Below, in pieces: positions 4,041 to 54,299 of a stretch of DNA of 64,000 nt (the stretch's first letter is position 1; every line of letters begins with the position of its first letter). This DNA comes from Monocercomonoides exilis PA203. Its lineage: Eukaryota; Protista; Preaxostyla. The notes under the pieces are model-generated. The model worked only from the letters and a program-made list of their open reading frames with translations, searched no databases and was not told the origin of the DNA. A program made the position numbers and the translations under genes. The stretch spans positions 806,001 to 870,000 of the forward strand of contig LSRY02000027.1 of assembly GCA_001643675.2 (NCBI GenBank). The letters run 5' to 3'.

Positions 4041-7000
4041 ATGTTCAAAGCACTTACGTTATTCATGATAATCTCGGCTCTTCATACAAATAATTTATGT
4101 GAATGTTTCTTATCTCAAATTATCCTGACAACAAATGTTCCAATTTATAACGAAATAGCCCAACTCAAATATTCTCCAAATTTGATTCAGCCACCACTTT
4201 TATGTGTGATAAACTTTTTTCGTAAAAAATGACACATTAATTATTTCAATAATCATTCATAAAACACACAGATACAAAATTTTCAACTCTTGTTTTCACA
4301 ACAAACTGCACCCTGAGTTTGCAGAAGTTGCAGTTGAGCCAAATGCCCGATAGTCACTTTCTTTCATCCAGTGATTCACCTGAAATCAGATTTCATTCCT
4401 GCATCATGTGCGTGGCAAATCCACAACAGAACAGCTTCATCAGCATTCGCTCCACAGTGCTGATTCTGAATAATCTGACAGTGCTGCTTCACCCTCCAGG
4501 GCACACCATCCAACCGCTGATCGATCCATCTTTGCAAAGTCTGAGCAGAAAGACTGCATATTCAATGCTGTCTGTTTCCTCGTCATCGTTTTCATCATTT
4601 TCACTGGAAGAATCTTTGCCGTTCTTTTCATCAAACACTCTGGAGCACCTCCACATCAGAAATACACACTTTTCCAACATTTCGCTGTCTCCTTCAGCTT
4701 TCCCCCAAAATGAAAAGCATACTGCTTCATGTTCCGCATGCACAATGCTGGCTGAACTGTCCATGTTTGAATGTGTCGAAAATGCACTGTATGGCAGCCT
4801 TTTTGAAAGCATCTGCAGGAAAGGAGGCTTTGCTTTTCTGAATTGCTCTTTTCACAAATGCAATCGTCAAAGAGAGTTAATTACCGAGCGAGTTGATACA
4901 TCTATTGCAAATGTTTCTTTATTCAGTGATGTGGACTTCATTATGACCAAAACTCATCAAGGAATTGGAGGGGCAATTTTTCATTCAGCAAATAGTTCTC
5001 TAAATATCAGAAGATGCTACTTTAGTAATTGTATGGTAAGTGAAAGCGGAGGTGCTGTTTGCTCAATATTCAATCAAAGAGTCGATGTAATGTATTCCAA
5101 TTTCTCTAATTGCAACGCTGATAAATACGGAGGAGGCTGCATAATATATAATGAATCATTTTTGATAATTCAAAAATGTTCATTTGAAAATTGTTCTGAT
5201 AAAAATGGAGGAGGAGCAATAAATCATCACACAAGTAATGAAAATGACATTATTGATCAATGCTTATTCCAAAACTGCAGATGCAATGGAACCGATCAAG
5301 GTGGTGGTGGAATTGACATTGGTTCATCATGCAAAACAATTATCAAAAATTGTGTATTTTCAAACTTGGTATCAGCAATTCTTGGAGGAGGAATAACCAT
5401 ACATACGCATCCCAGCCACGAATCAACATGTCGGCTCCTCTTTTGCTTATTCCGAAACAACACTTCCGAATCAGACGAAGGACACGATATTCACGTTGCA
5501 AACAATGTGACGTTATTGTTCAATGAGACATCGCTCGAGACTTGCCGAACATTCACCAACAAAGAACGGAGAGTGGTGGTGGCTGATGTCGAGTGCGATG
5601 GCTGGCTGCGGCGCATGAATTATCCGATTTATGTGAGCAGTGCCAGAGGAAGCGGAGAAGGGATGTGCGGTTGGGCAGAAAGAAAGTGCAAAACAATTGC
5701 CATTGCGCTCGAAATGCCGCTGTGGGGGATCGGAGCAGAGGACGAGCCTATTGTGCAGCTGGAGTCTGAAAGCCTGAGCGAATGTCCGCTTGTGGTTGAG
5801 AGGATAAAAGTGCTGGTGAAGGGCGTTTCAAACGAGCTGACTATCATCAGCAAAGACATCACTGCATCGCCTTTGCCACTGCAACAGCCGTTGATAAGTG
5901 TGGCTGGTGGTGAGTTGAGATGGACAAACTCTTCATTGATGCATGATCCGTCGATATCCTCTGAATGCCCTCTTGCACAGATCACTTCATCAGGAGTTTT
6001 TGTTCTTGAGGAATGCATAATCGCACCAGGAGGCGCACAATCAGCCGCTTCTGCCAGGTTCGAATCTCCCTTAATCCTTGTTGCATCTGCTGGAAAACTG
6101 AATCTGTTAAGCACCAAAATTGTGGGATTCTCGCTTGCGGATGCAGCAGCAATTTCAGTGGAGGGAGGATCCACAGTGTGCGCAAATGCAACATTTTCAG
6201 AGATTGTGAGAAGCTCAGGAAGTGGAGCAGCAATTCATGGCTCGCTTCAGAGCGCATGCACACTGGATCTGGACAACACTTCGCTGGCAAATTGCGGATG
6301 CAGCAGCAATGATGGAGGGGGGATCTGGGCAAGCCTTGGAGAAGGGAGCTTCATGGAAATTGGAAAGAGTTCACTGGCACTGTTCTCACAATGCACAGTT
6401 TCCAAGGAAGGACCTGCTTGCAGGGGTGGAGGGTCGTATGTAACTGTCTCTGGGGAAGATGCAAAATTCAAGTTCCAGCACGTTGATTTTCAGTCGTGCG
6501 ATGGGTGGAAAGGCAGAAACATGTTTGTGAGCGCTCCGCGTCTGAGCACAGTAATTAGCAGAGATTCGATTGCCTTTGGCACAGATAGCATGGAGGATGA
6601 CGATCTGATGGGATACGAAGACGGATTTGGCACAGATCCAGTGCCGCTGAAAGCCTTCCTGATTGAATTTGGAGGAAAAGGGTATGTTGGGGGAGAGAAA
6701 AGCCGCGACTTCAGAGGATGTGGCAGTAAAGAGTATCCATGCTGTTCAGTTCAGTACACAGGACTGCTGCTCTTTGAAAACACAAAAAGAATAATCGTGC
6801 TGAACAGCGGATTTGTCTGGAATGATGCAGCGGAGATGACTGGCCCAGCATGGGACATAGGGTGTACGGCACAGGAAAAGATCAGAGTTGGAGCATCACG
6901 AGCTGCAAATGCAGAAGCTATGATTGCTGCAAAAGCCAATACGGACATTACAAACGTGATGTTCGCTGTGCCCGGCAGATTGTCTCCTTCGGACTCGTCA

Positions 7001-10000
7001 AGCAATGCAGTGCTGATCCAGGGGCTGAACGGAACACTGAAGCTGTCTCTTTGCGGGATACAAATGGATCAGCAAACAGAAGCTGTGAGCTATGGGCTGA
7101 TTTGCATGAAGGGCGGGTCATTGGAGTGCATTCAATTCAATGCAGCGGGATTGCGCATGAGCGGAGTCAGCCTGTTTGTAATCGAGAATACGTGTGCCAG
7201 TGCAAGACTGGACAAGTTGTCGCTCACAAACACAACCACAACAGCGGAGACTGGACTGATTGAGGCAAAAGCAGGGAGCAGCATAGAACTGAGGAATTCG
7301 ACACTTGCTTGGCAAGACGGAGCGTTATGCTGCCACTTTGTAAAGATGAGCGACAGCGGAGCGGTTGATGCGAGCAGAAGTGCAGTTGTGCAGCTTGCGA
7401 ATAACACAGCCAGCAACATGATACTTGAAAGAAGCGGAGGATGCGTCGTCGAGGGGGTTGTGAAGTGCGGAAGCACGCTGATTGTTGTTGGAGGAGTGTT
7501 TGAGAACTGCACCAGCATCGACGGGAATGGCGGTGGGATTAGCGTGAAGCTGGAGAGCGGCTCGTCGATGCAGCTGGGGAATGCTGAGTGTGCTGTGGAG
7601 CTGAGGAAATGCGAGGCCCAGGAAAGGGATGCAGTGGGGTCGGGGAATGGAGGCGGGATATTCATTGAAATGATTGGCAATGCAGAAGATATATTGCTGG
7701 AATCTGCCCTGTTCAGCAACTGTGTTGCCGCAAGGGGCAATAATGTGTTTGTTGTTGCTGCAGACTTGTCGAGACTTATTACTCCTGAAAGAGTGAAAAT
7801 GGCAGTGAACTTGAGGGATATAAGGGGATTGAGCGGGTTTGAGAGGAGCACCACAAACGAGCAGTATGCAATTCCTCTGGTGGTGTATCTGTGGGATAAC
7901 TTCAGCGGGTGTGGATTTGCGGATGAGGAGAGTGGAGGCGACTTTAGTGCCTGCGGGTTTGAGCAGACACCGTGCAAGACACTTGATTACGAAATACTTC
8001 TTCGGCGCACAAAACAGTTTTCTTCCACATCCTCTCTTCCACTCTTCTCGCTTTGTGTTTCCTCAAGGTCTTATCTGAACGCAGCAGTGGCATTACACGA
8101 ACTCAACCCATCAAGCTCAGCGTCTGCACTCCCTTTTCCACACACTTGGCATTTGAACTTTCTCAATGGCAATGCATCTTCTGGATCGGAGTTTTCATTG
8201 ATTGGGAGCGCAGGAGATTCGGCTGTGGCTGTGAACAATTCTCTTGGGGGAGAGGAAAATGCAGCTATCACTTCGTCAATTGAGCTGACTGTGCGAAATC
8301 TGCAAATCATCCTTCCGATTGTGCAAACAGGAAGCAGAGCATGCATCATCTCTTCGAGTAAAATGCTGCACATCGACAAATGCACATTCAGCACAGGTGA
8401 AGAGCACAGACTCGGATGCTTCTTGCTCGAAATAGTTAAAGGCAGCTTTGATGGGAAAGATGTAGTGTTTGGCTCGAGCTCGTCTGCCGTCGATCTGACT
8501 TGCAAAGAATCAGCTGTCATGATCAGTCCGTTGAGTGCAACTTCTTTCATCAACTGCACATTCAGAAGCGTGCGCCACGCAGATGGAAACTCTTCCTGCA
8601 TTTCTGTCAAAGAAGGAGAAGAGGATGGAGAAGAAGAAGGAGAAACAGCAATTGAGATTGAAGACTGCACATTCGACGGTTGCAGCGTTTGCGCTGGAAG
8701 CGGCGTTGGAGGAGGGATCATGACAGCAAAAGGAAACCGTCAGAGGCTTTGGATAACCAATACTTCTTTGTGGAGATGCTCAGTGCCAAGCGACTCAGCG
8801 AGTGGCAGGGGCTTAGGGGGCGGACTGTTTGTCTCGTGTTGGGGCGCATCTTCCTTCAGGCTCGCCACTGTGTCATTTTCAGAATGCAATGCATGGAGAG
8901 GGAAGAACATGTTTGTTAGCTCGGACAACCTAAGTGAGAGAGTCACGAGGGAGTCAATGAACATTGTGATAGATGTTGAGATAGAGGAGGCACCAGACTT
9001 CGACGAGTTTTGCGGCTATGAGAATGAAGTCACTTCAACCGCTGTTCCGTTGGTGCTGTTTTTGCGAGATCCTCCACAACCCGTGCTCATTGGCGGAGAT
9101 TCTGCGGAGGAATGTCGGGTGTGTGGCTACATAGACTTTCCCTGTCCGTCGATTCCTTATGCTGTGGAGAACAGATTCAAAGAAGGAAAAGCAATCCTCA
9201 GGCTTCTCGAATCCTTCGCATTTCGCGATCATCTTGCTCTCAAAACACAAGAAATGTTCATCGACACAGCAGAAGAAAGACACAAGATTGCAGTGAATTC
9301 TGGAGGAAGCGGAGAAGAAATCGGCTTGATTGAGACCGGAAATGCGATCACATTCAATAACATCACTTTTCTCCTTCCTCCTTCGCTGTCGATGAGAGAA
9401 GTGCTCTTATTATGCTCAAGCTCCACTTGCATTGTGAACGGCTGCTCGGCTGAAATGAAAGAAGCAGGGCAGCAGCCATTGTTCGGGCTGTTTGCCGTTG
9501 AAGGGGGAAAATTGGTTGTGATGGATTTCGAAGTGTGCAACATGTTGTTTGGATCTGAATATCTGATATCTGTTCGGAGCATCGGAAGAAGCTCCGAGGC
9601 ACAACTGAGCAATGTGCACTGGGAGGGAGTGCAGAAAAGCGGCACAAGAGGGCTGATAGAAGTCGGACCAGGGTGTATCCTAAAAGTTGAAAAGAGCGGA
9701 TTTGGAAATGCAGAGGAAGTGAGCTGCTGCATGATTGAGGCGAACGGGAAGGCAGATGTGACAATATTAGACACACTGTTTAATGGAGTCACTCGCGGAA
9801 CAGGAAAAGGGGCAGCATTCAGCGGGAATTTCGATGAAGACGGGTCAGCCACTTTTAGAAACAACACATTTGACAGATGCAAGTGCGCTGCAGAACTGAC
9901 AGGAGGAGCAATATATGCAAATGTGGAATCAAGAGGGCAGTTGATATTCGACAACAACTCCGTGAGTTCGTGCGAGGTGCCAACAGTCGAAGGATTGGGA

Positions 10001-13000
10001 GGTGGGCTGTACGTGAAACTGGGAGCCATGGATACCCACTACTCCATGATGAACGATAACTTCGGGCAGAACAAGGCATATCTGGGAAGAGATGTGTTCA
10101 TGGTGTGTCCTTCGCCCCGCAACATGATCGATATAGCGCATTGGGAAGGATCTGCAGTTGAAGGGCAGGATAGCAGCACGCTATGGACTGCAGACAGCGA
10201 TGTTTCGGCGCAGATCAGCGAAACTATTTTGAGGTTTCTATTTCCCCCCAAAACTGACATCGTGTTCGTGATGGCAGGAGGATCCAATGAAAGCGATTGT
10301 GGAGACGACCTAAAGCCATGTGGCGATCTGTATGAAGGCTTTAGAAAAATGGACGAGTCAAAAATGTTTCTGCACATCAACGATTCAGGCAGGATCAGCA
10401 AGAAAATGGAAAGAGATAATGCTCCCCTGACGTTGAGAGGCAGCCAAGCAGAAAGATCGATTCTTTATGTGGAGTCAGGTGGCTGTCTGTCTCAGACTCG
10501 CGGTGATTCTTCGACAAGCATGACTGTCACCGATCTGATCATAATGCTACCAACATCCAGTTCTGTTGATGCTGTGATAAGCGGGAGTGCAGGGAAAATA
10601 TTTATTACGAAGTGTGCAATCCAGCTGGCAGCAGGCACCACAAACGAGGAGTCGGCATGCACAACGATGTGGATTGCCAAAGGATGTGGCAGCAGCATCC
10701 GCTTCAACAATGTGTCTGTGCCAGGCATCGTCTTTTCAGGAAAAGGAGGAGTTGCTGTGGTAGATGGTGGAGAGCTGATCGTTTCTCACTTGACCGCTTT
10801 GGATGTGTCGGCACATGGCCAGGAGCATGGATTGATACAGGCAGTCAATGCAAAGAATGTGAAAGTCGAATATTCTGAAGTGGCTGTCTGCTCATCATCT
10901 GAAGGGCCATTTATTAGCATTACTGGGGTTCATGCAACAGAAATATCAGGGAACTGTTCCTTCAGATGCTGTAGCAATGGGGCTGAGAATGGAGAAGGCG
11001 GGTTTATGCTGTGCCAGCTGGATAACAAAGAATGCTTGAAAATGCGAAATACATCGATTTCTGAGTGCAGTGTGGATCAAAGCAGCGGAAAAGGAGGAGG
11101 CCTGCTATTAAGCTTGGGAAATAACTCAAACAGCAATTTTTCTCTGGAGAGCATTTCATTTGCCGGAAATAGCGGGAAGTATGGTCGAGATGTATTTGTT
11201 GTATGCAAAGCATTGAACGAGAGTATTGCTTCCAGTCGATTTGTGTCGATTGCTGGGGACAGAGAAAATGGGAAAGCCGATATGGCCGGAACAGATTCGG
11301 ACCTATTTCGCGGAAAAGTGGTGGATCTGGATTTGCTGTTGACGCAGTATTGCTCGAGCGAAATCTGTGTGTCTTCAGAAGGTTTGGATGTGCTGGGATG
11401 TGGAAAGAAGGAGATGGCGTGCCACACATTCTGGAGAGGCGTGCAGAATATGGAAAGAGATTCTCTTTTGAAAGTCTTGGAGATCAGAGACGAGACATGC
11501 TTGGCTGATTATCATAACCTCTCAACGTTTGTTTTGGAGCATGAGAAACAGGAATCGTCGATCGCTGAGCTTGCGAGGGTAATTGTAATGGATGGAGTTG
11601 AAGCAAACAGCAGGAAATGTGTCCTTCTGAACGAGTTGTCGCTGACCATCAGGAGGATAGAATTTGTCATTCCTCCGATTATTTCAGATGACATTAATGC
11701 ACTTCTGCTCAGCGAGGCGCCAGCTGAGATAATCACGATGGATGCGTGCTCATTTTCGACAGCAAGTGCCGAATCAGTTGGATACCATGTGCTTGAGACA
11801 AGATCAGGAAAAAGTGAGATCGTCAATACGACAATCATTAACATGGCTTTTGCGGTTTCTCCTTTCAACTTATTGGCAGATACCTATTTTGAGGGAGGTT
11901 TATATGAAAATGTCAGTTCTTCTAAGTGTAGTGCTGGCGGAGTTCAGATGGTTGTGTTGGATGCGCTTGATGAATTTGTCATGACGAACACAACAGGCAG
12001 AAACTGCAGCTGCTCGACGGCAAGCGGAAGAGGGGGTTTTTTGTATTTGGATTGTAACGAAAGCGCATCATCAACCCCATTTAGCTTGCATGGCGTCGAT
12101 TTTAGTGAAAACAACGCAAATGTTGGGAAGAATATGTTTCTTGTCTCGTCTGACTTGAATGCAACTGTGACCAATGCAAGCTTTGATTTTTTGTGGGGGC
12201 CAAGCAGCGCAGACGGCGAGCTGTATGTGGGGAAAGACATGGTGTTCGACGAATGCGACTTATTCAAGTTTCTTGTTGATTACCGTTCATCAACAATTCA
12301 TATATCTGATAAAGGTCATGATTTTGCTCGCTGTGGAAGCTCTGAGGAGCCTTGCTTGTCGTTATGGCAAGGAATCGCACACTGTGCTGGAGAGGTAGTT
12401 TCAAAAGCATTAATCATTGAAGGTTCGGCAGAAGTCAATGATTCATACAACATGACTAATTATGCGTTTTCCTCTGGTACAGACGATACAGAGGAACAGG
12501 AATATTCTTCTCTGATATTTGACAAAAAGAGTTCAAGAGAAGGCGAAACTTTTATAGAGAACTCAGGAGAATTGAAGTTTGGGCTGATAAAGTTTGTGCT
12601 AACGGAAGACTTTGATAATGAGATAAAAGCAGTGATAAATCATGCAAAGGGGAGACTTGAGCTGAGCAATTGCTTGTTGCAGTCGAGAAAGGAAAACGGA
12701 AATCACAGGCAAGGATTTGTTGCGGCAAAGCAGGGCTCGGTGAAAGTTCATTCCCTTTCAATAGAAAGCGTGAATATGATATATTCTGTCTTTACGATAA
12801 CATCAGGATGCGAGTGTGTGCTAAAGAGCCTTCAAATGCACTCGTGCAGCATCGAAAGCGGGAGCGTGCTGATGGAGATAGAAGAATCCGCCAGTCAAAA
12901 TGAAGAGAAGGAAACACACATCTCTTTGGACGAATCGTATTTTGCACTATGTGTTGCTCATCAAAACGGGCCGAGCATTATATGCTGCCGCGGAAGAAGC

Positions 13001-16000
13001 ACAACGACTCTTGCGATCAACAGCTCATGCTTTGATGGGTGTAAAGCTCTGAGCTCAGAGAAAGGAGGCGCTGTATTCTTTGAGTTGAACGAAAGGGGAT
13101 CGCTTGAGATGAAGCAGTCAAATGTGTCTCAGTGCGGATGCTCGCCCGAGACTGGAAAAGGAGGAGGCATTTATGTGAAATCGCAGCTGTTTGGGGAGCT
13201 GAACTTTATTTTTGACAAGTGCAAATTTTCCGGAAACAGCGGATGGAAAGGAAGAGACATATTTGTGGAGTGCATCGAGATCTCGAAGCAGGTGAACGAC
13301 ACTCAGTTCAAGATGGATTTGAGGGAAAACGAGTACAACAGGAGCAATGCTATCTTCGGGATCGATATTGCAAACGAAGCGCCTATTGATCTGTTTGACT
13401 TCATATCAACGCTGCTGCAAAGCACAATATTTGTCTCTTCTTCGGCAAGCAGGGGTGGTAATAATGGGCGGCAATGTGGCACTTTTTCTCGCCCATGCAA
13501 AAGTGTGAATTATGGGCTGGGCCATCTTGTTGCTGATTACGAATGCAGATTACTTGTGGATCTGGAAAGCGTGGTAGACGGGATGATGGAACTGTCAGAC
13601 ATGATACTGAAATCCTTGGCGCAATCCATTGCGCGTGTAAGGATTGAGATAGGAACGGCTCGGCAAGGAGATCCAGCAATCAGGATTGGCGGAAATGTGA
13701 TCGTTGAGAACATAGGATTTATCTTTGCAAGATCTCTTGTTTCTGGTTGTGATATCCTATTTCTTGTAGAAGATGCGGCTTTGTCGATGGAGTCGTGCGA
13801 AGTGTGCTCAAACAAGACTGAGGGTACAGCACATACAGTACCTTGCGCTCTTCGATGCACAGCAGGTTCAATAAAAATGGCAAAGTCTGCAATAACGAAA
13901 ATAAGAGGGATACGCCTGATTGAGCTGTTCAATTCGACAATGGAACTGAAAGAAGTTGACATCATAGATGCTGAAGCAAGCAAATGCTTCTTTGCTCTGG
14001 ACAGCTCGGACATTGTTCTGAAAGATGCAACACTTCGCGATCTGCGCATTGATGATGGCTCGGTTTTCTGTTCAAGCAGCAGCACTTTGGGGAATATTCT
14101 GTCAATGGGTATTTCAGTATTTCAGAACATTACTCGCCCATCGTTTGGAGCTTCATTAGCTGAACTTGAAAACGAAAAAACGAAAATAAGCATGGTGAAC
14201 TGCTCGGTTTACGAATGCACAATAGATGATGTTACAGGATCTTCAATCGAGAAGTGCGATCCAGCAAAAGTGTCGAATTTGAGAGTTGCACTTTTGCTGG
14301 GGCAAGAGATGAGATATCTCATGAATTACCAAAATTAGAGGGCATTTGCCAATGGAATGAATCGATGCTTGCGTTTTGGAAGTGCATAACCTTGATAAAA
14401 GACACAACAATATGCAACTCTTCGCGAGGGGGAGTGTATGTTTCCGACGGAGCAATGACAATTGAGAAGGGAGAATTCACGGAAAACAATCCACTCGTCA
14501 GTGGATATCCATCGATGCGTAGAAATGTTGCTTGCTCAGGCAGTGGAACAGTGAATGTGGTGAGCTTGAAAGGAGGAGATGGGGTGAAGGATAATTCATC
14601 GTTATGGATGTTGAATGAAGGGTGCAGTTTTGAAGGGATTGTTTCAGAAAGAGCATCATCATTTTTCATTCCTGTGCTAGAGTCTGTAGAAATAGAAGAA
14701 GCCGGAAACGAAATGAGGTTGGCATTTGCAGGGCTGCTTCTTCTTCCATGCAATCTATCATTCAAGGTTGTTAGCAGCATTGGTGATGAGGAGGCTATTG
14801 AAACGAAGATGTTCGACGAGGATGGGTTTGTTTCTGAGAAAGAAGTGGAGGGACTGATTGCAGCGAGCACAATCACAGGAGCCGGGGCAGAGGTGGAAGT
14901 GAAGACAGCAATCGAGTATTGGAGCTCTGGAAAGTGTGGGATAACTTCATGGTGGATCCTGAAAAATATCACAGAGCAAAGGAAAGAGTACGAAGTACAA
15001 ACTAACTTGGATAAAAAAGAGGGATCAATGTGGCCAGTTATTGTTGCTGTAATGTCAATAATACTTTTAATTGTCCTCATTGCATCCATTGCCGTTACAA
15101 TAAGATGGAGAAAGTCAAAAAGACGAACGGAGGAATTAGAAGAGATTGTGAATGATAACATCAGAAAGGATCCGAAGGCGTTTGAGATGGTGACGATGGA
15201 GATGTCGCCGGAGGAGCAGTGGAGGAGAGTGGCAGGGGATGTCGAGAAGAAGGACGATGAGAGGATAAAGAAGAGGGTGTATGAGAAAAGCTTGGGACAC
15301 TCGGAGTCATCTGAGCATTTGCTGAGTGAGAGCGGTTCCACAGAATATATTCTTGGAAAGGACTCAGACAACATTCCCGATTGGGTATTGGAGAAAGTTG
15401 AGGAAGAAGAAGAAGAGATAAGGAAGAGAACACCATCACCTTCCATCTCGTCCACTTCAACAACAGACACTTCAGACACAGAATCGACTTTTGTTCGGGG
15501 GGAGGATCTGTGCCCAACTACCTCATCGATGTCTAACTTGGTGGATGCAATGGCATGTTCTTCGCCTCATGAGAAGCTCATTGTGGATCTGAGGGATTCG
15601 CTGTTCATGTTGTTGCATGGAAGGAATGAAAAGAAGGAGATGGCGATTGGCACATTGAAGGAGAGAGAACAAACAGCTGCTCAAATCCTGTTCTGGGTGG
15701 CTAACCTTGCTCTCCACTCCTTTGATGAAATGGAAAATTCACTTCAATCATTAGCCAATTTGAGTCCCCACATTGTATTGTTCTCTGAACACATGGTCAT
15801 CTGCATTGTCATGCACTCAGACTTCTTGTCTGATGATGATTCAGACTCGTCTTCCATCTCCTCATCAACTGTTGTGACTTCTGCCAGCGATGATGATGAT
15901 GATGACTCTCTGCCCTCATCCGCCTTTGAGGATGAGGATGACTTCAAAAAGGAGTGCCTGAGATGGAAGGCACCAGAGCTGTTGATCAACAAGAAGATGG

Positions 16001-16356
16001 GAGCAACAAAGGAGTCAGTTGCCTTTTCGATTGGAATGATGCTGTGGGAGTGCTTGACGCTCCAGATCCCGTTCGGGGAGTATGAAGCAGAGGTGGCGGG
16101 ACAGAAGATTGTGAACGGAGAAAGACCAGATTTAAGAAAAGTGCTGGAATCTTCATACGCAGAGGTGCTGCATCACGCTTTTTCTCCTCAGCAAGGCAAC
16201 CGCCCAACGCTAATTGCAATGAAAAGGGAGTTTATTCAGCGTTTCCCAGCAGGCACTGTGATGCTCACAGTTTCAGATGCCATCGATTTCGAGAACGAAA
16301 GCGAAGGAGAGGGCAGCACTGCCATGGAATCAAGGTCCTTGTCGAGCAGCAGTTGA
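4041..16356 (+). CDS. Giant single-pass receptor-like protein, copy A (~4,100 aa): signal peptide, Cys/Gly-rich beta-helix (Pmp/pectin-lyase-like) ectodomain, TM, TKL-like pseudokinase C-lobe
   Basis: ORFs 4319..14338 and 14254..16356 are joined by a 2-bp insertion at ~14250 (ATCGAGAAGTG vs ATCGAAGTG in copy B). A hydrophobic exon starting at ATG 4041 (MFKALTLFMIISALHT) splices in frame via GT..CAG 4222-4271; donor 4204 is also in frame. GGAI/GGGxYV and FxxNxAxxGxDxFV repeats; TM WPVIVAVMSIILLIVLIASIAVTI-RWRK; RWKAPE..SIGMMLWE..PF..GERP. Confidence 0.85.
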
Positions 16357-18450: not shown

Positions 18451-18544
18451 TCTGTTTCCACTCGCGAATCTTCTTAAGTTTGCTTGAAATAGAATTATCC
18501 AGAAATAGATATTTTTTCTGTGAAACTTGGTGTATGTCAACAAT
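18451..18544. other. Unique 94-bp spacer (loop) of the palindrome
   Basis: Arm complementarity ends at 18450/18545. Confidence 0.9.
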
Positions 18545-33495: not shown

Positions 33496-33498
33496 ATA

Positions 33499-42800: not shown

Positions 42801-44956
42801 TTTGAAGTCAAACTCAAATTTTTCTTTTTATTCCTCATTTTTTCCATTTGTTTCTTCAAGTTTTCTTCCCACAGCACAACAACATTAGCGAATATCATCC
42901 GGACGATGCAGAAGACGCAAGAGCGGTTGAAGCAGAAGTGAAGAGAAGAAGCAGCACGAAAGACGGGTGAGAAAAAGAGCATCAGAAGAAAAGAATGCAA
43001 AGAAGAGTGAGGGAGTGAGTGGTCGAAGGAAGGGAGAGGCGCTTGGCAGAGGAGAGAGAGAAAGAAAGAATTGGAGGAAGGAGAAGAGGGAAAAGAGGGA
43101 GAAGAGGGAGAAGAAGAAGAAAGAGAAGAAGAAGAAGTGAAAGATGGGAAAGAAGAAGAAGAAGGAAGAGAGGAAGAAAAAGGCTTTTGATGCAAGGGAA
43201 AGTCAGTTTGATGTGATTGTATTGAAGCAGGCTCTTTGAAAGAAGAAGTTTCAATGTTTGAGGAATCGATGGAAGAAGAGGAAGAAGAAGAAGAAGAAGA
43301 TGATGATGATGATGATGAGGTAATTGTTTGTGAAATAACAGTGGAAGAAGAACGGGAAGAAGAAGAAGAAGAAGAAGTTGATGAAGGAATATGAGAAGAG
43401 GAAGAGGAACAAGGAAATGAAGAAGAAGCAGAAGAAGAAGAAGAAGAAGAAGAAGAAGAATTCAAACTTGCCAAAGAAGTTGTTGGAAGAGCTTTGAAAA
43501 GCGGATTTGTGAGGATCAAAGAAGGAAAGCGAAAAGCAGCAAAAAATGGAACAGAAGAAGGAAGAAGAAGAGAATCACAGCAATTTGAAGGAAGATGGGC
43601 TGGATTATGAAGAGAAGAAAGAGAAAGAGAGGAAGAGGAAGAGGAAGAAGATGAAATATTGTGATTTTTCACATTTCCTTCTTCTCTTTCTTTCTCATTT
43701 TCTTCTTTTTTCTCAATTTTATTTTCTTCTTCTTTATCTTCACTTATGTTTTCACATTTTGCATTTTCCATTTTTTCCTTCTTTTCCTTCTTTTCCTTCA
43801 TCTCCTTCATCTCCTTCTTTTCTTTCTTTTCTTCCTCATTTTTCTTATCAGAAGGCAAACGATATCTTCTTTGAATGTCTTCGAATGTTTCTGTTCGAAC
43901 ATTCTGCGACAAAGCAACTCTTTTCTTTAGCATTCGAATGGCAGAGGAGGCAGTTTGAGAAGAAGAAGAAGAAGAAGATGATGATGATGAAATGAAATAT
44001 TCAGAGTTTGAGGGGAGTGAAGAAAAAGAGGAAGAGGAAGAGGAAGAGGAAGAAGAAGGAGGAGGAGGAGAGGAAGAAGAAGAGGAAGAAGATGATGATG
44101 AAGGCAATGTTAACGTAACAGTTGAATCTTTCTGATGTTGAGAAGAAAGAGGAGAATTATCCTCTTTGTCTTTTGCATTTCTTTGGATCAGTTTCGGCCT
44201 TGTGATGATACGTGGAGGAGGAGAATTGGTGGATGTAGCAGAAGGAGAAGAGGAAGAAGATGAAGAAGAAGATGATGATGATTTTATTCGAACAGAAGAA
44301 GAAGCAGAAGCAGAAGAAGAAGAAGAAGAAGAAGAAGAAGAAGACGAAGAATCCAACATCATTTTTTCTCCAGCTCTTCCACGAGCATTCTGTTTGGATG
44401 CATCAGAAGCAGAAGAGACAGAAAGAGTGCCAAACAGCTTTCTATTTGAAGACTTTGCTGCTTCTTTTTCTTTCTCTTCTTCTTCTTCAGACAATTTGAT
44501 TGCATTCAACCTTCCTGTAGCATCTCCCACAAGACATAAAAGACTCTTCTGAGAAGGAAAACGAGAGGATAGTGAAGAAAGCGAAATGCAGCTGATGTCT
44601 GGGAAGGAAGAAGAGGAAGAGGAAGAAGAGGAAGAAAAAGAAGGAGAAGAAGGAGAAGAAGGAGAAGAAGATATAAAAGAATTATGAGTCAGGTTGGGGT
44701 TATTCTTATGTGATGGATTTGATGAATGAAGGGATACTTTTCTGTTGACCGTTTTGGAGGTTTTATGAGCTTGAAGACTTGTGTGTTCATCATTCTCTTC
44801 CTCTTCCTCTTCCTCCTCCTCCTCTTCTTCTTCTTCCTCTTCCTCCTCCTCCTCCTCTTTCTCTTCCTCCTCCTCTGATGGTCTTTCGTGCTTCGCCTTA
44901 TCAGCATAACCTCCTTCACACACATTCAGTGGCTCAAAAGTGCAAAGAGTCTTCAT
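36899..44956 (-). CDS. PAN2: PAN2-like poly(A) deadenylase with large low-complexity insertions (>=2685 aa; further 5' exons likely)
   Basis: C-terminal DEDDh nuclease motifs preceded by a PAN2 UCH-like domain end (YSLTAIVSNV..HFILH..QWFVVNQTLI..ALDF..KWRVPVLLLY). Poly-Ser, poly-Glu and EK tracts throughout. Confidence 0.8.
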   Translation of the reverse strand: MKTLCTFEPLNVCEGGYADKAKHERPSEEEEEKEEEEEEEEEEEEEEEEEEEEENDEHTSLQAHKTSKTVNRKVSLHSSNPSHKNNPNLTHNSFISSSPSSPSSPSFSSSSSSSSSSFPDISCISLSSLSSRFPSQKSLLCLVGDATGRLNAIKLSEEEEEKEKEAAKSSNRKLFGTLSVSSASDASKQNARGRAGEKMMLDSSSSSSSSSSSSSASASSSVRIKSSSSSSSSSSSSPSATSTNSPPPRIITRPKLIQRNAKDKEDNSPLSSQHQKDSTVTLTLPSSSSSSSSSSSPPPPSSSSSSSSSSFSSLPSNSEYFISSSSSSSSSSSQTASSAIRMLKKRVALSQNVRTETFEDIQRRYRLPSDKKNEEEKKEKKEMKEMKEKKEKKEKMENAKCENISEDKEEENKIEKKEENEKEREEGNVKNHNISSSSSSSSSLSLSSLHNPAHLPSNCCDSLLLPSSVPFFAAFRFPSLILTNPLFKALPTTSLASLNSSSSSSSSSSASSSFPCSSSSSHIPSSTSSSSSSSRSSSTVISQTITSSSSSSSSSSSSSSSSIDSSNIETSSFKEPASIQSHQTDFPLHQKPFSSSLPSSSSFPSFTSSSSLSSSSPSSPSFPSSPSSNSFFLSLLCQAPLPSFDHSLPHSSLHSFLLMLFFSPVFRAASSLHFCFNRSCVFCIVRMIFANVVVLWEENLKKQMEKMRNKKKNLSLTSKSSSSSSSSSSSSSSSSSLSSSQSPSFHPVFNPLPEITSSSVSPVLSDHSSDSSPEQKTKPAKSSSADKQTSEVAVASNNQTFSRPSKSSSSSSSISSSSPSFSSLPPSSPSSSSSSSSSSSSEDLWEKLRTQRVVSTKDLTMMLTNIIRYKQRMKRLIAMKKEKEKEKEKEKEKENEREIEKEKEIEEKKKTKDNISEEEEEKEGKEGKEGKEGKEGKEGKEGKEGKEGKEGKEGKEEREEASKEEEKDMFEAEMMEEWEEYAKEKSEDEAEERNVQQHLARFLARNSAEIQLEKQNDSEKGNKFGANSENHRKNEKLNGRKKEKRGRGGGDKDEKDKEGEGEGEGEETIEEEEETQIKSDNSAMKRLLCEGDPLPLSLFQLSALYTRLRKECIIQQLLSRIDEVDSVSVEMRQMAMWNCAINCSCSGSCSCSASNSSNSSSSSSVSNSSISSTSTSSSSSSSSSSSSSSSSSFQPEKHFHHNELPLLSFSSSFHPSPCFLTATQLAMRLILQQLHWDSLSLKDLRAINSYVCKHSVNVGGSSNKRKKSQNKKKMNEEIDNSLNKSNTSSSDSPTKTDSSSIKNHKNHFEFPSLLPSSCSSLNDPLPKPSFLDVFVPSFVEQWSSRLSFPSVEPTQLPLFCTHISFGRVKNSCQELSSSSSSSSHSPSSCSSSSSPSSFSFPSFPQSSPLPALLFVSIASQPSSSSSSSSSPSNNPYCIPFDPSTIPPSFIIDHTLYSLTAIVSNVVEYDDEMNDNPSSSCHIEKTDRNCIEAKGNACNTNKKEESNKAIEVNEVKEENKEDEEMIDDDKQKVLHVRFKTEADADSFDESTHSNSSSASSSATSSPSSPSSPSSPSSPSSSSSSSSSTSPASASESDLPSLTSLHSITPEYTTRIEHFILHTLISPDLVPFPDSPSKTSSSSSSSSFSSSISSAFSSSQPANSSDSSPSIPSNPLQMGSLKQFKSHPTSLPLSESASSFAPSSMHFSPQWFVVNQTLIAPSSRSSALDFSAPAQKWRVPVLLLYTQHKYSLFNPSSSSSSSSSIIPRSLLLPSPSLSIHSLYTTARVVCSQLLNILIISQHPFKVHQRKKELAISKMSRREEDEVNKGLEKVKYKYTKESNENRRKFEKEGENAKFPIKNSSSSKEAAATSNAISSLKHLTWRWLEEQSSSISSSLCTSASSTASWFSMLSLLPHTPFPSDRQLSFFFAEQLISPSAGKYSLPPEALLPEKGDFIGIDCESVILNSNALGITLPFNWIAHTEQTSADLKKTSNEKAPSKIISTEMKENDSENSSIFSKNSIFSMLSRYLEANPTVPLFPQKKVGDGWIVFTPRKRNGFAFKDTLEPSSLSVNAQKKLCSRPFALPKSFHAAFFSPFISVVASPAYSSLVSSSSSLTSSLNILSSFHSMGRVSLVTFLNPTSASSKHYASNLSNTSSAFSYSSSSTSVPLTSNSVNSVSSSFSPLQPPPLPLKARVISDVLVTHTINDVTDYLTFVSGLQKEMIDEKQQKKEAGVKNEVGGGISISRSHINSAPSSSGLHADSVSSDQKFFSFAAGSSAMTSFPQESSSMPNLLPPSSSRLPLLHRSEVVTFLQFLVWRGCVFVGHAVNGDVNQCSISPAPSRTADTVILLRLPFRRFLSLKVLCLCVCGWTMQTAEHSSAIDAWGALALWLFYVCVVGRQRWLRKTLSLTNLNETISSTGSEGKESLGLENATVLKQFEQDGRAHIGSAHRTYSYIPSSDERKHRNEESFGWEELCDSLFQTFSAHESNHCTNQMNLIRSFMLYPETGDPWEWGRGQFLEEKLIGDVGSEDLCRGDVEDFERKGEFLSHLISSLIPTHTSEFEKSNLSRRMPLPPQQYLSEGMTGATHSEYFIPQNPFSMASPQILNEPLPHHSSFNFYNLQSSNLPLQNQNSPSHRRVHQDVLLNVPQRSKHAPSSSPSELLKEFLEHAYFVANRERWGVQKHHR
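40221..40268. repeat. 9-bp tandem repeat (GAAGAGGGA)n, ~5 copies, encoding (SPS)n in PAN2
   Basis: Directly visible. Confidence 0.85.
42089..42191. repeat. 9-bp tandem repeat (TTTTCCTTC)n, ~11 copies, encoding (EGK)n in PAN2
   Basis: Directly visible; protein reads KEGKEGKEG... Confidence 0.9.
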
Positions 44957-47487: not shown

Positions 47488-50400
47488 CTAGATAACTATA
47501 CGATTGTTCGTTATAGCAGCTGAATGAATGTCACTTTCTCTATTTTCTAAGTTTATTGCATCAGTCATTGTGAATACCATTGCACTTTGCGGAAACAGTT
47601 CCACAAACTCCCGCTTGATCTGTGCTAATGAGTGTCGATGCTCTGCATTCATGCTCATCGCTTTTTCAACCATTCCCTTCATTCGAGATTCACTGATTAT
47701 CTCCATCTTTGGCCTTTCTCCATTCACAATCTTCTGTCCAGCAATCTCTGCCTCATACTCCCCGAACGGGATCTTGAGCGTCAAGCACTCCCATAGCATC
47801 ATTCCAATCGAAAAGGCAACTGACTCCTTTGTTGCTCCCATCTTCTTGTTGATCAACAGCTCTGGTGCCTTCCACCTCATGCACTCTTTTTTGAAGTCAT
47901 CCTCATCTTCAAACGCAGATGAGGGCAGAGAGTCATCATCATCATCGCTGGCAGAAGTCACAACAGTTGATGAGGAGATGGAAGACGAGTCTGAATCATC
48001 ATCAGACAAGAAGTCTGAATGCATCACAATGCAGATGACCATGTGTTCAGAGAACAATACAATGTGGGGACTCAAATTGGCTAATGATTGAAGTGAATTT
48101 TCCATTTCATCAAAGGAGTGGAGAGCAAGGTTAGCCACCCAGAACAGGATTTGAGCAGCCGTTTGTTCTCTCTCCTTCAATGTGCCAATCGCCATCTCCT
48201 TCTTTTCATTCCTTCCATGCAACAACATGAACAGCGAATCCCTCAGATCCACAATGAGCTTCTCATGAGGCGAAGAACATGCCATTGCATCCACCAAGTT
48301 AGACATCGATGAGGTAGTTGGACACAAACTCTCCGATCGAACAAATGTTGAATCTGAATCAGTCGTTGAAGTGGTGGAAGTGGATGAAATGGATGGTGAT
48401 AAAGCTCTCTTTCTTGTCTCTTCTTCTTCTTTCTCATCCACTTTCTCCAACATCCATTGAGGTATTTTGTCTGAGTCTCTTCCCAGAATGTATTCAGTGG
48501 AACCACTCTCACTCAGCAAATGCTCTGATGACTCTGAATGTCCCAGGCTTTTCTCATACACCCTCTTCTTTATCCTCTCATCGTTCTTCTTCTCTGCTTC
48601 CTTCTCTGCTCTCATCCACTGCTCCTCAAGAGACATCTCCATCGTCGCCATCTCGAATGCCTTCGGATCCTTTTTAACATTGTCTTCCACTATTATCTCC
48701 AATTCTTCTGTTCGTCTCTTTTGCTTTCTCCATCTAACAATAAAGGCTATTGCGACGATGAGAACAATCAATAAAATCACAATCAACAAAACAATCACAA
48801 TCAATGCCCACGAAGATTTTCCTTCTTTCCCTCCTTCAACTAATCTTTCATCATCTTTTTGTTTTGTTTCGCTTGCATTCTTCAGTATGAATGACTGAGT
48901 TGATGAAGGAGATTCTGTATTCCCAAACAGAATGCATGCACTAATTTCAGTGTTTCCTGTTGTTGAAGCAAAGTCTGAAGATGGAATTGAGGAATGGATT
49001 TCATTTTCTGACACATAATCATCAATTCCAAAATTATATGTTTCAATATGTTCTTCATTTCCTGAACTAATTATTATTTGGAGAGAAAGATTGCAAGGAA
49101 GAAGAAGAGAACCAGCGAAGAACAATTCGATTTCATTTTCTGATTGTTGTGATCGAATTGAATGAAGAGAAGGAATGAAAAAAGGAGATGTCAAAATCGA
49201 TGGAATTCCGGACAGATTGCACCCATTATTCAGGATCCACAATGAAGAGCTGCTCGCTGCTTCATCACCTTTTTTCAAACTTTCCGCATCAATCTGCGCA
49301 GCATCTTCACAGAGAATATTTCTTCGGGCAGATTCAAAGAAAGGAATTGATGGCGAATTGTTTCTGAACTCCACATTTTTCAGTCGAATATCTCCACCTG
49401 ATGCTGATAATGCTCCAGATGGGGCATTGACGAATGAAGAGTTAACGTCTTCAACTGAGCAGCAAGTAATATCCACAATCGACGAGTTCCAGCTGCATAT
49501 TTCTGAAACAGTGGAAGATGAAATCTTGCTTCTTTGTGGATTGAGGCTTATGACATTTTCGGAATGAGCTGAAGCATTGTTGTCAAAAATATCAGCATGA
49601 TTTCTTTCATGAAGACAAACTTCGTTTTCTTTGTTTGATGCTCCATCAAATGTGCACGATTCCAGTTTGAGTTTTGGAAGCGATGAAAATGAAGCCAGTT
49701 GGCCTCTGTCACCAGACGATGAACACAAAGAGCAGCTACAGTTGAGCAAGTGAACTTCACATATTTGAGATGCAAAAGAGAAAATTGTTGATGAACTATC
49801 AGAGCTTGTGATATTTCTGAACGAAGAAAAAGACATATTTATCCGAACAAAAGGCTGTTTCTGTTCTGTTTGAACTGTGTTATTCACGGAAAAAACGCTT
49901 CCTTTCTTCAGTGTTATATTTCTGGCATCTATCCATTCGAGGGAGGAGTTTTTCTTTGGCTCCTCGAACACAAAGATAGAGTTCATGCAAGTGACAGCGT
50001 CAAGGCAAATGTGAGACAGCTCAGCGCTTGCCGTATCTATCACAAGAGGAGAGTGAAGCACAACTCGTCTGCATGAGAAATCTTGGATTTGGAGTTTTGC
50101 TGAATTCTTGCAGATGAAGCAGGTGTTTTTGCAGCTGGAGTCTTCCAGCTCGCATGACTGTAAAATTGCATCTGATGAATCGATGAGCAGGAGAGTGAAC
50201 GGGATGGAAGCCATTGAATCCTGTTGACTGTTTCGAACAGAATCAGCTTCAGAAAGCTTAAACGAACAACGAGTGAATTTAACTTCACCAGAGTTAAGAA
50301 AGAAGAAAGTTTGGTGAAGTGAGCAAAAGGATATTCCAAAGAAAAAGGACTGATATTCAATCCCAACATTTCCTGCGCAGCACATCAAGCTGTCTCGAGT

Positions 50401-53400
50401 GCAGTTGATATCAGAGTTGACGAGAAGAGATGTTATTGCTTTGGAGATACTGCGAATGCTGAGATCTTGGAGGTTGCATTCGCTGCTGATTGTGCTGCTT
50501 CCATTCACAACAATCCGACTTTCAAAAGACTGTGTCAGACGTTCCAGTCCATGATTCAGCGTGAGGCATGGCACAGTTGCTCGTCCGCAATTCTTCAGAA
50601 TTGTTCCTCCATGCAGCTCGTTGCCGATGAATATCAGATCGTTCCGATAACCCATGATGAGATCGATGATGTTCACATCTTCTTCATCTGATCCTCTGTG
50701 AATATTGGAACCGAAGATTGCATTTTTTGTATTATACGCAGGTTCTTCAACGTGGAATCTGAACTGTTTCTCGCTTATTTGTGTTTCAAGACTTGTGCAA
50801 CACACGAAAATGTCTCTCCCGCTCAACGCATCGTTCATATTGAATATGTCTTCCGTAAACTGAAATGATAATTCACCTTCACAATCGCAATTCAGATACG
50901 CCCCGCCTCCTTTTCCTCGTGGTGCTTTGCACAGCATGAAAATCGAGTCTTTGATTTCCAATTTCATTCCTTCGCAGTACTCTATGAACACGCAGCCTCC
51001 TTTCAACGAGTTTTGAGCTTCACAGCTGATGAAGTTAGAATTGTTCACAAGTATATCTGTTGACTTGAGCATTTTGTTGCTGAAGGAATTTGATGATGAA
51101 TTGACTGAAGATATTAAATTTTCTTTTGCAAGAGAAATCAATCCACAAGTTGAAGTTGTTTGTGTGTAATTCAGAGTCATTTCTGTAATATTCATTGTTG
51201 ATGATGAAGCAGTAAAAGCAGAACATCTTCCAAAAATCAATTTTGATGCTGAAACTCTATCAATGATGAGATTTCCTCCAGTTGCAGACAGAAGTGAATA
51301 AGTCAATTCGCAAGATATTTCTTCTTGCGCAGAGAGAAGAAATGAACATTTCCTGAGAGAAAGAGCGGAGAGATTGGACAAATCAAAAGAGGAGCGGATT
51401 AATGAAGATCGTTGGTTGAGAGAAGATGGAAGAACAAAAAAGATTCCACATATCGAAGTTGAAATAGAAACAAGCAGTAGTTCATCAGACTGCTTTTGTG
51501 ACATTCCATTCACGCTTATGGAAACGGGCAGATTCTCATCTCCAATCGCATATTCGTGATCTTCAAGATGCATTTCATGATCAAGAACAAATCCAGTTCC
51601 CAGCATTACCATTCTTTTCTGATCAGGAAAGCGCAATGCAACAGCTGCTTCAATTGTCTGGCAAGGACAATCATCGAAGCCACAGCCACTGAAATCTGTT
51701 CCTTCGCTCCCATTCACATGCGCTGCTCCGTTCCACTGACGGAGAAAACACACAAGAGGGATGATGTGTTCCAGACTTGCTGATCTATCTATTCCGCACA
51801 ACGCTGAAAGGTTGTTCAAGTCGAGAACAAAATTAAAAGTGTTTTTTCTCACAATTTCTTTCAAAACATTTCCATTAATGAATATGTCCGAACCCATCTG
51901 TGCATTGCACTCTTCAAATGAAACATTTGTCAACGAAATTGAGTGAGATGAATCAGAGAAATAAACATAAATCCCTCCTCCATATCCGCTTTGTCTGGTT
52001 TGTCCATTCTGTGCGTTCCGAGCTCTGCATTTTGAAAATTTTGTGCATTCTGTTCCGTTAACTTCAATTTTCCCTTCATCTTCCACGTTAATGCTCAATG
52101 CTCCACCATTTCCATCTTCACACACGCTTTCTTTCATTAAGCAATTTGATACAATTATCTTTCCTCCAGATGATAATGTTCCTTCAGCTATAGACCCGCC
52201 TCCATTTGCTCTTGTTAATTTGCTTGAGTTTGTTGAAATGATCTCCAATACGCATGTCTCTGCTTCCTGTTCAAAAGAAATTGCACAGCAACTGGAGAAT
52301 CTTACCTCAAACATTCTCACTTCTTCCAAAAGGGCATATCCTGCATTCACTTTGAACACACTTGAGTGAACTTCATTCTGCTCATCAACACAAGAAACAT
52401 CACATTTCTTCACTGTTGTTTTTCCATTTCCACTCATCACCAGAAAACAATTGGATGTACCATTGACTCCATCCATGTGCTTCAAGTGGAAGTTGTTAAT
52501 ATCCAAAGTGCCAGTTTCCACTGTGAAAACATTATTCCCTTCAAGTGATCTGATAATTGTTTCTTCTCTCGAAATGCCAGCTAAAGAAGCAAGTCCTGTG
52601 CCCACTTCAATTATTTCTTCGCAGAATTCACAGGAATCTGCAAGAATTGTGGTATTGGTGCTATTTGTGTTTCTGGAAAGAGAATATTTCAGAGTTCTGC
52701 AATAAGGCGCCAAACCACAGCCATCATGATTAATTCCTTCGCTGAAATGAGCTTTGATCTGAAAATCTGTTTGATAATTTGGAAGCCAATCGAATGGTTT
52801 TGAATCCTTGCATGTGTACCAGTTTTGTGTGATACATCGAACGACTCTTGTTCCTTGGGACAAAGAATAACATTCAACAAAATTATCTTTCGTTAAAGAG
52901 TTTAAACCAACGTGTGCTGTGATGTGAACATCCATTCCGCATTGTTGAGCTGCAGTGTTATTCTGGAACAAGCAAAATGAGCATTGAAATGTAATTATTT
53001 CGTTATCACTTTGTATCCCAAGTAAAATGCAAGGTGCAAATGTTTTAGCTGTATTATGTTGGAATAGGTTATTTGAGAGGATTATGCTGGAATTGATGTA
53101 ATATGTGTGAAATGCTCCAGTGTATTGTGTTCTACAATCACCTTTTTCAAAAAAATTCGATTGAAATAAATGAGATCCCTTCTGTAAATAACCCAACATT
53201 ATATGTCCCTTTCCATCTCCACTGTTATTTAAAAACAGCGTTGATTGAGTTGTTGATTGTGTGTTATTCATGTAATTAATAGCACCTGCTTGAATTGAGT
53301 GACAGTTCGTAAAAATGCAATGATCACACACAAATGAACCTTTTGTTGATTCAAAACTTACTGCTCCTCCATAATTTGTGGAATCGCATTTATCAAAATG

Positions 53401-54299
53401 ACAGTCTAATATTTTTAATGAAGCATTTTGCTCGCATTGAATGGCACCACCATTTCCCGAACTGTTGACAGAAAAGAAATCATTGGAAAACGAGTTGTTG
53501 CCCGATACGAAAGGTTGTTTTGTTGAATAGTTTGAGCTGCATTTGTCAAATGACGAATTGATGCAAATGAATGAAGATTGGGCTGGAGTGACTATCAATC
53601 CGTTGTATGGATTCATGCATTTCGCCATATTCGTTGAAGTTATTTCAATATTTTCAATCTCTTTTGAATTGTTGATTTGCTTTGAGCATGGAGAGGTGAG
53701 ATTGAAAAAGTTGCAGTTTGCGATTGACAAAGAAAAAGCATCCATCGAACACACAAATGGAGGAGAATCGATTCTCAACGATATGAATGAGGATTGAGAA
53801 AGAAATACCGATCCGCTGGGCTTCAAATTCAATTTTTCTTCTTGACCTGTGATAATTGGTGGACTGCTTGAAAAGTGCATGTTGGAGAAAAATGAAATAT
53901 TCTCCAAATGGAATAACCCACCTATCGATGAAAATGGAGAACATTCGGAACAGGAGCCAATGATGGAACACGATTTCAAAACTATAGCTGAAAATGGATC
54001 AATATGTGCAACAATGGAGTATGCTCCGAGCCTGAATTCAAGGGATTTCAGATGAATCGTACTGTTGATAATAATGAACGATTTGCACGTGTCAGAAGAA
54101 GACAAAATCGTGGAAGAATTGTTGAAACAGTCATATTTTCGAAAGATATTCTTTTTCTGAAATGGGCTTGCCTGTGATTTTTCTGAAAATTATTGTATAG
54201 CAGTTGGTTCATTCAAGTCTTCAGAGAAAATAAAAAAGGCAAACGAGCAAAGATTACAAAAGATACAGAATGAATAAAAGCAGCGAACAAAATCAGCAT
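47488..54299 (-). CDS. Third receptor-like paralog, C (~2,250 aa): 3-module ectodomain, TM, same pseudokinase tail
   Basis: Uninterrupted ORF 47488..54105, open upstream to ~54190. Predicted signal exon from ATG 54299 (MLILFAAFIHSVSFVIFA) joins in frame via a GTTTG..TTTTCAG intron at 54244-54183. TM WALIVIVLLIVILLIVLIVAIAFIV-RWRK; tail RWKAPE..SIGMMLWE. Confidence 0.85.

Follow-up and report, generated by a model that had tools for sequence, protein, structure and literature searches.

A putative type I receptor family of about 800 copies with predicted beta-helix ectodomains and a kinase-remnant tail in Monocercomonoides exilis

A 64,000-nucleotide stretch of the Monocercomonoides exilis PA203 genome (contig LSRY02000027.1, positions 806,001 to 870,000, forward strand; hereafter the window) carries three genes, A, B and C, that are predicted to encode giant type I membrane proteins. 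The best explanation of our data, which we hold with moderate confidence, is a receptor family of about 800 copies with rods of beta-helix modules outside and a kinase remnant as cytoplasmic tail, shaped by palindromic duplication and gene conversion. A first-pass annotation of the window had proposed a receptor repertoire with variable outside and constant inside, segment exchange and a pseudokinase tail. These parts hold, whereas the treatment of A and B as diversified paralogues does not.

Architecture of genes A, B and C

The window consists of AT-rich intergenic DNA surrounding very long open reading frames (ORFs). The ORF reading confirms all three genes with the coordinates and layout first described; a correction is needed for A and B, which lie in the two arms of a palindrome. 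A, B and C are, as predicted from sequence, type I membrane proteins with a signal peptide, an N-terminal beta-helix domain, a series of modules, a juxtamembrane beta-helix domain, a transmembrane (TM) helix and a tail. The prediction comprises the signal peptide, the single TM helix and a bias of sequons and Cys towards the N-terminal side. NxS/T sequons number 1.8 per 100 aa in the ectodomain and 0.47 in the tail, and the Cys content is 4% and 1.6%, respectively. These densities fit a long ectodomain that is extracellular, Cys-rich and probably glycosylated.

Gene A lies on the + strand. A putative signal-peptide exon (4041–4098, MFKALTLFMIISALHT...) is followed by a putative intron (4099–4271, GTGAAT...ACACACAG), both read from the sequence by an in-frame donor/acceptor search. 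The main exon (4272–16356; ORFs 4319–14338, then 14254–16356) starts with the N-terminal domain, a GGx-rich beta-helix. The last six of the seven modules are located at 6719–7951, 7952–9121, 9122–10297, 10298–11398, 11399–12331 and 12332–13474, followed by the juxtamembrane domain (13475–15039), the TM helix (15040–15102), the conserved tail (15103–16128) and a variable C-terminus (16129–16353). Gene B, the mirror copy of A, occupies 20598–32961 on the − strand, with its ATG at 32961 and ORFs at 32683–21413 and 21476–20598. The first of these is unbroken across the ectodomain and TM helix; the frame of the tail is disturbed by homopolymer indels at 21508 and 20826. Gene C, also on the − strand (47488–54299), has its ATG and signal exon from 54299, the main ORF at 54105–47491, the TM helix at about 48801–48739 and the conserved tail at 48735–47710. 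The main ORFs of all three genes lack a signal peptide; upstream of each, a putative short ATG exon would encode a signal-like peptide and precede a putative in-frame GT..AG intron. Exons were left unjoined in every search, and A and B were queried as separate ORF pieces.

A and B contain seven modules each of about 310–410 aa, with a period of 316–416 aa, marked by GRNMFV-like (G[RK][ND]xF[VL]) and CGx4-7PC motifs. Gene C contains fewer. Across the family, the ectodomain has 3–7 beta-helix modules of about 390 aa, and the cytoplasmic tail has 415 aa. In the public model of gene C, MONOS_4010, the start is placed at an internal Met, with about 409 codons of the ORF left out before it, and the model departs from the ORF ahead of its last 1108 residues; it comprises 1766 aa as compared to 2205 for the ORF. 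A hydrophobic N-terminal stretch is present in only 26 of 120 public family models. The N-termini of the family are widely mis-annotated, with public models often N-terminally shortened.

Size of the family

The genome contains 806 matches to a degenerate pattern for the invariant tail peptide MSNLVDAMAC and none to the reversed control. The tail of gene A, searched against its own genome, gave 1395 first-look candidates. All 92 that were scored have E values <1e-217 and are 76–92% identical, with a short open frame in about one-eighth. In the protein database, 526 long and 128 short proteins match, and nearly all those listed are named "uncharacterized protein". The protein searches listed the best 120 matches each (240 in all), with a prefilter that needs shared five-residue words. 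The proposal of a large family is thus borne out by the tail-copy count that had been suggested (806 motifs) and by at least 526 long annotated proteins. If every motif copy represents a gene of median size, the family would cover about 6.5 Mb, or about 8% of the genome, an extrapolated upper bound.

For sequence comparison, we sampled 15 further full-length genes and 30 tail loci, and 120 members for motif counts. At 14 of 14 sampled further full-length loci, an uninterrupted ORF of 2355–3073 aa is present, and 12 of 14 have an in-frame signal peptide. The M. exilis genome papers report "protein tyrosine kinases" (332, of which 320 in the TKL group) as the largest family, overlapping unclassified repeats (PMC6759080, PMC8767320). 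Neither these papers nor the Preaxostyla comparison (PMC10703272) describes the architecture reported here. The largest family of the best-known amitochondriate eukaryote has so far been on record only as kinases and unclassified repeats, with 332 members reported as against about 800 copies here, which may occupy up to about 8% of the genome. Its products are predicted to be giant membrane proteins, probably at the cell surface, that combine multi-beta-helix ectodomains with a kinase remnant that lacks the N-lobe.

Constancy of the tail

The mean pairwise protein identity among 16 genes is 87–95% in the tail, 39–62% in the last 250 aa of the ectodomain and about 20% further out, in agreement with the variable outside and constant inside that had been described. 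Likewise, the ectodomain of C resembles those of A and B only at motif level (21–23% protein identity), and its tail is almost identical to theirs (15103–16128 and 48735–47710 are 90% identical in DNA).

Two processes contribute. In the tail, the proportion of synonymous differences (pS) is 0.54 and that of non-synonymous differences (pN) is 0.06 (pN/pS 0.11). Strong purifying selection on the tail protein, the acidic and Ser-rich parts included, is on these values the main cause of its constancy. The tails are also homogenised locally. All seven sampled tails of contig C8 (309–986 kb) form one clade in the tail tree, as do all five of contig C22. The number of contig-label changes on the tree is 15, the minimum possible; the shuffled mean is 19.3, and none of 500 shuffles reaches 15. 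Within C22, tail pS is 0.16–0.35, as compared to 0.55 between contigs, and in seven of ten of the same C22 pairs the pS of the juxtamembrane domain is 0.57–0.77. The C8 tails (L005, L016, L017, L023, L024, L026 and L029) group with good support. Since they form one clade despite a spacing of up to 680 kb, homogenisation of tails across the whole chromosome is suggested. Gene conversion as the sole cause of tail conservation is ruled out by the between-chromosome pS of 0.55 with pN of 0.06. The near identity of the C tail to those of A and B therefore reflects mostly family-wide constraint together with homogenisation within the chromosome.

The tail as a kinase remnant

Every member examined combines a single TM helix with an RWRKxK stop-transfer motif and a 413–437-aa tail. 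The tail matches PF07714 with 28.8–29.8 bits (cut-off 23.1), at profile positions 162–257 only. Sequence matches in the PDB (BTK, ZAK, TAK1 and ILK, E about 1e-5) likewise cover only positions after the activation loop. The APE motif is present in 120 of 120 tails. HRD and VAIK-like motifs are found in none of the 120, DFG and GxGxxG in one each and D[LIVM][KR]..N in two; in our own reading, LANLSPH and HSDF stand where HRD and DFG would be. The description of the tail as a pseudokinase agrees with the absence of HRD, DFG, Gly-loop and VAIK in 119–120 of 120 members. By its sequence motifs only, the tail is indicated to be the remnant of a kinase C-lobe, lacking the N-lobe and the catalytic residues, that is, a dead kinase. 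It also contains coiled and acidic or Ser-rich segments with invariant motifs, and the 280 aa before the C-lobe have no known relative. The result calls for caution with kinome counts that are built on Pfam matches to the C-lobe.

Receptor pseudokinases and kinase scaffolds, such as ILK and the pseudokinases among plant receptor-like kinases, also have a kinase-fold cytoplasmic part without catalytic residues and a presumed scaffold role. They keep both lobes, whereas the present tails show recognisable kinase sequence only beyond the activation loop. A further comparison is with the transmembrane kinases (TMKs) of Entamoeba histolytica, whose ectodomains consist of Cys-rich CXXC-type repeats, not strings of beta-helix modules. 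TMKs resemble the present proteins in that they form a large type I family whose ectodomains vary and whose cytoplasmic domain is of the kinase type, in a gut protist that likewise feeds on bacteria; some are tied to phagocytosis (PATMK), and there are subfamilies with members at least 95% identical and many truncated copies (PMC2211552, PMC2880585). They number roughly 90, many with a full kinase domain, as compared to about 800 copies here with a nearly invariant tail that lacks the N-lobe.

The ectodomain

An alignment of 38 modules gave an AlphaFold2 module model with a predicted local distance difference test score (pLDDT) of 83.8 and a predicted template modelling score of 0.88. The model is a right-handed parallel beta-helix. 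VIA-align superposes 250–290 residues (Z 20–22) on many beta-helix proteins, among them PL6 alginate lyases, polygalacturonases, phage depolymerase tailspikes, pertactin and Vag8, at 7–14% sequence identity. A Foldseek search of the PDB with the module yielded weak matches only (best E 0.02). In the juxtamembrane domain and in P0098, PF13229 scores above its cut-off, whereas the N-terminal domain and the individual modules have no Pfam match. The language-model neighbours of the modules are the DUF1565, Chlam_PMP and Beta_helix clusters. PF02415 (Pmp repeat) had no match at E up to 1, and the resemblance is at motif level only. The module motifs are GGG-hydrophobic and F..N.A..GKD.F, and across the 38 modules only C, G, F and A occupy invariant or near-invariant columns.

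Chlamydial Pmps, pertactin and Vag8 (PMC10715098, PMC11166332) have the same right-handed parallel beta-helix with short coils and Gly-rich turns. Those proteins are bacterial autotransporters with a single helix and a beta-barrel anchor; the proteins described here have serial helices, are anchored by a eukaryotic TM helix and continue into a cytoplasmic tail. The Pmp-like and BspA-like proteins of Trichomonas vaginalis, also a metamonad, form expanded families with 'sticky' repeat ectodomains, a TM helix and a cytoplasmic tail (PMC6701047). The Pmp type among them is beta-helical with GGA/FxxN-like coils, and the present modules carry related-looking motifs. The Trichomonas tails are short with NPx[YF] or acidic endocytic motifs, neither of which is present here, and the Trichomonas Pmps number about two dozen, without multi-module giants or a kinase remnant.

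Segment exchange

Within the genes, A and B differ mainly in one N-terminal cassette, as had been noticed. It is located at 4868–5245 (+) in A, with its mirror at 31752–32129 in B, and would form about three coils of the N-terminal beta-helix. Over about 380 bp there are about 130 substitutions and no indel, in arms that are otherwise 98–100% identical. The pS between the A and B cassettes is 0.58, as compared to 0.009–0.014 in the flanks, and pN/pS is 0.39. The cassette is thus old sequence in a young background, not the result of local hypermutation. Point hypermutation or positive selection as its source is ruled out by the same two values. The B cassette is 91–99% identical to that of a paralogue at C22:359 kb (L046); the A cassette has no closer copy in the assembly. 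At a second variable cassette (5294–5503, +), A, B and a paralogue at C22:976 kb agree, and the C22:359-kb paralogue differs (pS 0.55). Outside the two cassettes, the N-termini of A, B, L046 and the C22:976-kb paralogue (L032) are 95–100% alike.

A recombination breakpoint is located at the boundary between modules 2 and 3 (7949–7952, +). MONOS_8208 (L032) is 95% identical to A upstream and cannot be aligned downstream. L032 shares with A the head up to 7949, the exact end of module 2, and again the sequence from the TM helix to beyond the 3′ flank; the middle is different. Other segments conflict in the same manner. Compared with A and B, L036 has a tail identity of 0.95 and a C-terminus identity of 0.52, and L032 has identities of 0.56 in the juxtamembrane domain, 0.92 in the tail and 0.97 at the C-terminus. 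The TM segment of L036 is 0.97 identical to that of C. L032 and L036 are 0.91 identical in the juxtamembrane domain and 0.62 in the TM segment. The juxtamembrane tree places L032, L033 and L036 in one clade with 100/100 support, and approximately unbiased (AU) tests reject this clade for the C-terminus (p 3e-15) and the TM segment (p 5e-4). The conflicting segment trees, the old cassette and the breakpoint at a module boundary together show that segment exchange is real, as had been predicted with incongruent trees. Mosaic genes from recombination among paralogues, a feature of var/VSP-type families, are therefore found here as well.

The palindrome

Genes A and B are located in the two arms of a palindrome of about 46.8 kb, which is centred at about 18498, begins 3,584 bases before the window and ends at 43182. 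In a self-comparison, 3475–33522 matches its own reverse complement at 98.4%, and 1–3505 matches 39505–36001 at 98.9%. The left arm covers 1–18450 and extends to C22:802417 (flank L031). The right arm covers 18546–43182, including an insertion of 2,505 bp (33496–36000) that is present in this arm only. The centre (18374–18624) is a foldback (MITE-like) repeat of about 250 bp, with a non-palindromic spacer at about 18451–18545. The foldback element is 85% self-complementary, has further copies at L035:9557–9807 and L031:2228–2477 and shows about 50 times the word depth of the neighbouring DNA in short-read contigs. Short inverted repeats can give rise to large palindromes, and from this general background the central foldback would fit such a route.

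The arm alignment shows an identity that falls outwards from 100% in the inner 9 kb or so to 98–99%, then 96%, and 91% at the outer end. Between 9318 and 17272, there are no substitutions, only changes in homopolymer length and one GA indel; from 9318 outwards, the arms diverge by 1–2% before the 96% and 91% zones. The inner-arm differences (14249, 15497, 16178, 17002–17469 and their mirrors) are all length changes in homopolymers or dinucleotides. From the base-by-base alignment of the arms, A and B are mirror copies. They represent one duplicated locus rather than two diversified paralogues, and as evidence for diversification between paralogues the pair fails. Other convergent pairs of the family (L002/L003, L007/L008) are 98–99% mirror copies with different spacers, and additional pairs have identical scores or closely spaced inverted tail motifs.

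The ampliconic palindromes of the human Y chromosome also have near-identical inverted arms of tens of kilobases, a short spacer and mirror-paired genes, and they are homogenised by arm-to-arm gene conversion. Here, in contrast, identity decays from the centre outwards, the centre is a foldback repeat, and a single gene family has palindromes at many loci. Gene conversion in palindromes and homogenisation within chromosomes can thereby be studied in a natural setting.

Transcription

RNA contigs from four libraries of an independent study contain parts of the A/B region. One RNA contig of 935 nt matches the final 220 bases of coding sequence in A/B and the 460 bases that follow with zero mismatches, and continues into a spliced intron of 62 nt (19960–20021, GT..AG on the + strand), a short way beyond the 3′ end of B. 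Hundreds of distinct RNA contigs match the conserved tail at 95–99%, which suggests that many paralogues are transcribed in bulk culture. A small convergent transcript (19814–20128, +; mirror at about 16869–17183, −) overlaps the receptor 3′ region and is present in both arms.

Mode of evolution and proposed function

New copies arise by duplication, often as tail-to-tail palindromes, of which A/B is one, centred on a short foldback element. Gene conversion is strongest near the palindrome centre and among the genes of one chromosome. It keeps tails alike and shifts cassettes, modules and tails between copies, which makes every gene a mosaic; the rest of the constancy comes from purifying selection acting on the tail protein. 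Duplication, conversion and mosaicism can be read from the alignments and trees described above. As to the working of the proteins, we infer that the variable beta-helix rods bind diverse surface ligands, for example glycans on bacterial prey or in the host gut, and that the common tail may act as a non-catalytic scaffold through which all receptors feed into one intracellular machinery. The predicted architecture makes surface recognition a reasonable reading. The family would then be a concrete candidate for the means by which this bacterivorous commensal of the gut recognises its prey or host. A more far-reaching idea is that the roughly 800 receptors are a recognition repertoire for prey or host mucosa on one non-catalytic module, with palindromes and tail homogenisation as a mechanism for trying new ectodomains, possibly with restricted expression per cell. 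This idea is speculative, and we give it a small chance.

Several points weigh against the receptor explanation. The RNA evidence consists of contigs from bulk libraries only and is uninformative on level, strand and ends; the spliced intron of the 935-nt contig belongs to the convergent neighbour on the opposite strand, not to B. The AlphaFold2 model of the tail from a 20-sequence alignment has a pLDDT of 36.5, so that the sequence is the only basis for the proposed scaffold role. The tail has no conserved endocytic motif of a canonical type, and a reading based on such motifs is rejected. All 240 listed protein matches are from M. exilis; no relatives outside the species were found among the best 120 per protein search or in a metagenome scan with tail peptides, and comparative support is therefore absent. 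The groups for the AU tests were named after the trees had been seen. One short-read contig crosses the palindrome centre (18421–18574) without a difference, but because the centre is a high-copy repeat this contig may derive from another copy. Finally, both A and B are frameshifted in the assembly, A by an extra GA at 14249 and B by G5 for G6 at 21508 and T6 for T5 at 20826. These frameshifts are located in homopolymer or dinucleotide runs within an otherwise identical stretch of the arms, each break in one copy is matched by an open frame in the other, and the reading of the A tail agrees with all paralogues. They look like unpolished nanopore errors, and hence false, where short reads match both arms. 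Mapping of short-read and RNA contigs gave no indel row at 15497, 16178 and 20826.

Alternative explanations

The public annotation implies active receptor kinases of the TKL group, and both the PF07714 score above cut-off and the classification in the genome papers agree with it. As the match is restricted to the end of the profile, the catalytic motifs are missing in practically every member and the predicted secondary structure (of low confidence) has no N-lobe strands, we regard this as close to untenable. The outer part could instead carry the activity, with the modules as surface-anchored lyases or hydrolases for the breakdown of glycans from bacteria or the diet; the best structural matches do include alginate lyases, polygalacturonases and phage depolymerases. 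The identity to these is very low, however, the fold is just as typical of the non-enzymatic adhesins pertactin and Vag8, which are matched too, and there is no conserved acidic or basic residue for an active site in 38 modules. With C, G, F and A the only invariant residues, a scaffold or adhesin is favoured, and the enzyme explanation is quite unlikely. That the family is selfish or decaying repeat DNA without cellular function might be argued from its overlap with RepeatModeler 'unclassified repeats' and from the short open frame in some scored copies. Such DNA would hardly maintain intact ORFs of 7–9 kb in 14 of 14 sampled genes or a tail pN/pS of 0.11, and the unit has neither a transposase nor terminal repeats of its own, which makes this highly improbable.

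The palindrome itself could be an artefact of assembly, a nanopore fold-back or a mis-join, in which case A and B would be one gene or would not be inverted neighbours. The inner 18 kb, identical save for homopolymer indels, and the ambiguous short-read support at the repetitive centre are what such an artefact would leave. Against it stand a stepwise outward divergence, a 380-bp cassette and a 2.5-kb insertion that differ between the arms, a non-palindromic spacer and palindromic pairs with different spacers at other loci, and we consider it unlikely. An antigenic-variation coat was also considered, in which a var/VSP-like repertoire is expressed from one or few genes per cell and palindromes and cassettes serve programmed switching. 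Giardia VSPs and Plasmodium var/PfEMP1, like the present family, combine a variable outside with a conserved inside and evolve as mosaics through recombination between paralogues; the large repertoire, the cassette mosaics at the receptor tip and life in a vertebrate gut would suit this explanation. VSPs and PfEMP1 are defined by mutually exclusive expression and switching, and their folds are unrelated to the beta-helix modules; the VSP tail has 5 aa as compared to 415 aa here. The many tail-matching RNA contigs suggest broad transcription, the cassettes have old synonymous divergence with no dedicated donor array, and no switch element was seen. The analogy has support from mosaicism only, with nothing found that points to programmed switching, and a coat of this kind is improbable.

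Other features of the window

The right-arm insertion is flanked by foldback elements of about 270 bp (33493–33794 and 36001–36266) and contains a remnant of a DDE_1 (pogo-like) transposase (34295–34693, −; Pfam E 1.7e-9). A further copy of the 270-bp element is located at 58389–58665. Three ORFs of 284–439 aa (54994–56313, −; 57653–58543, +; 61065–61919, +) match no Pfam family. Gene D (36899–44956, −) encodes a low-complexity protein of 2685 aa, rich in Ser, Glu and Lys, of no clear family, and has a mirror part at 118–2607 (+). The 3′ two-thirds of gene D are located within the palindrome, and its truncated mirror copy therefore runs off the left end of the window.

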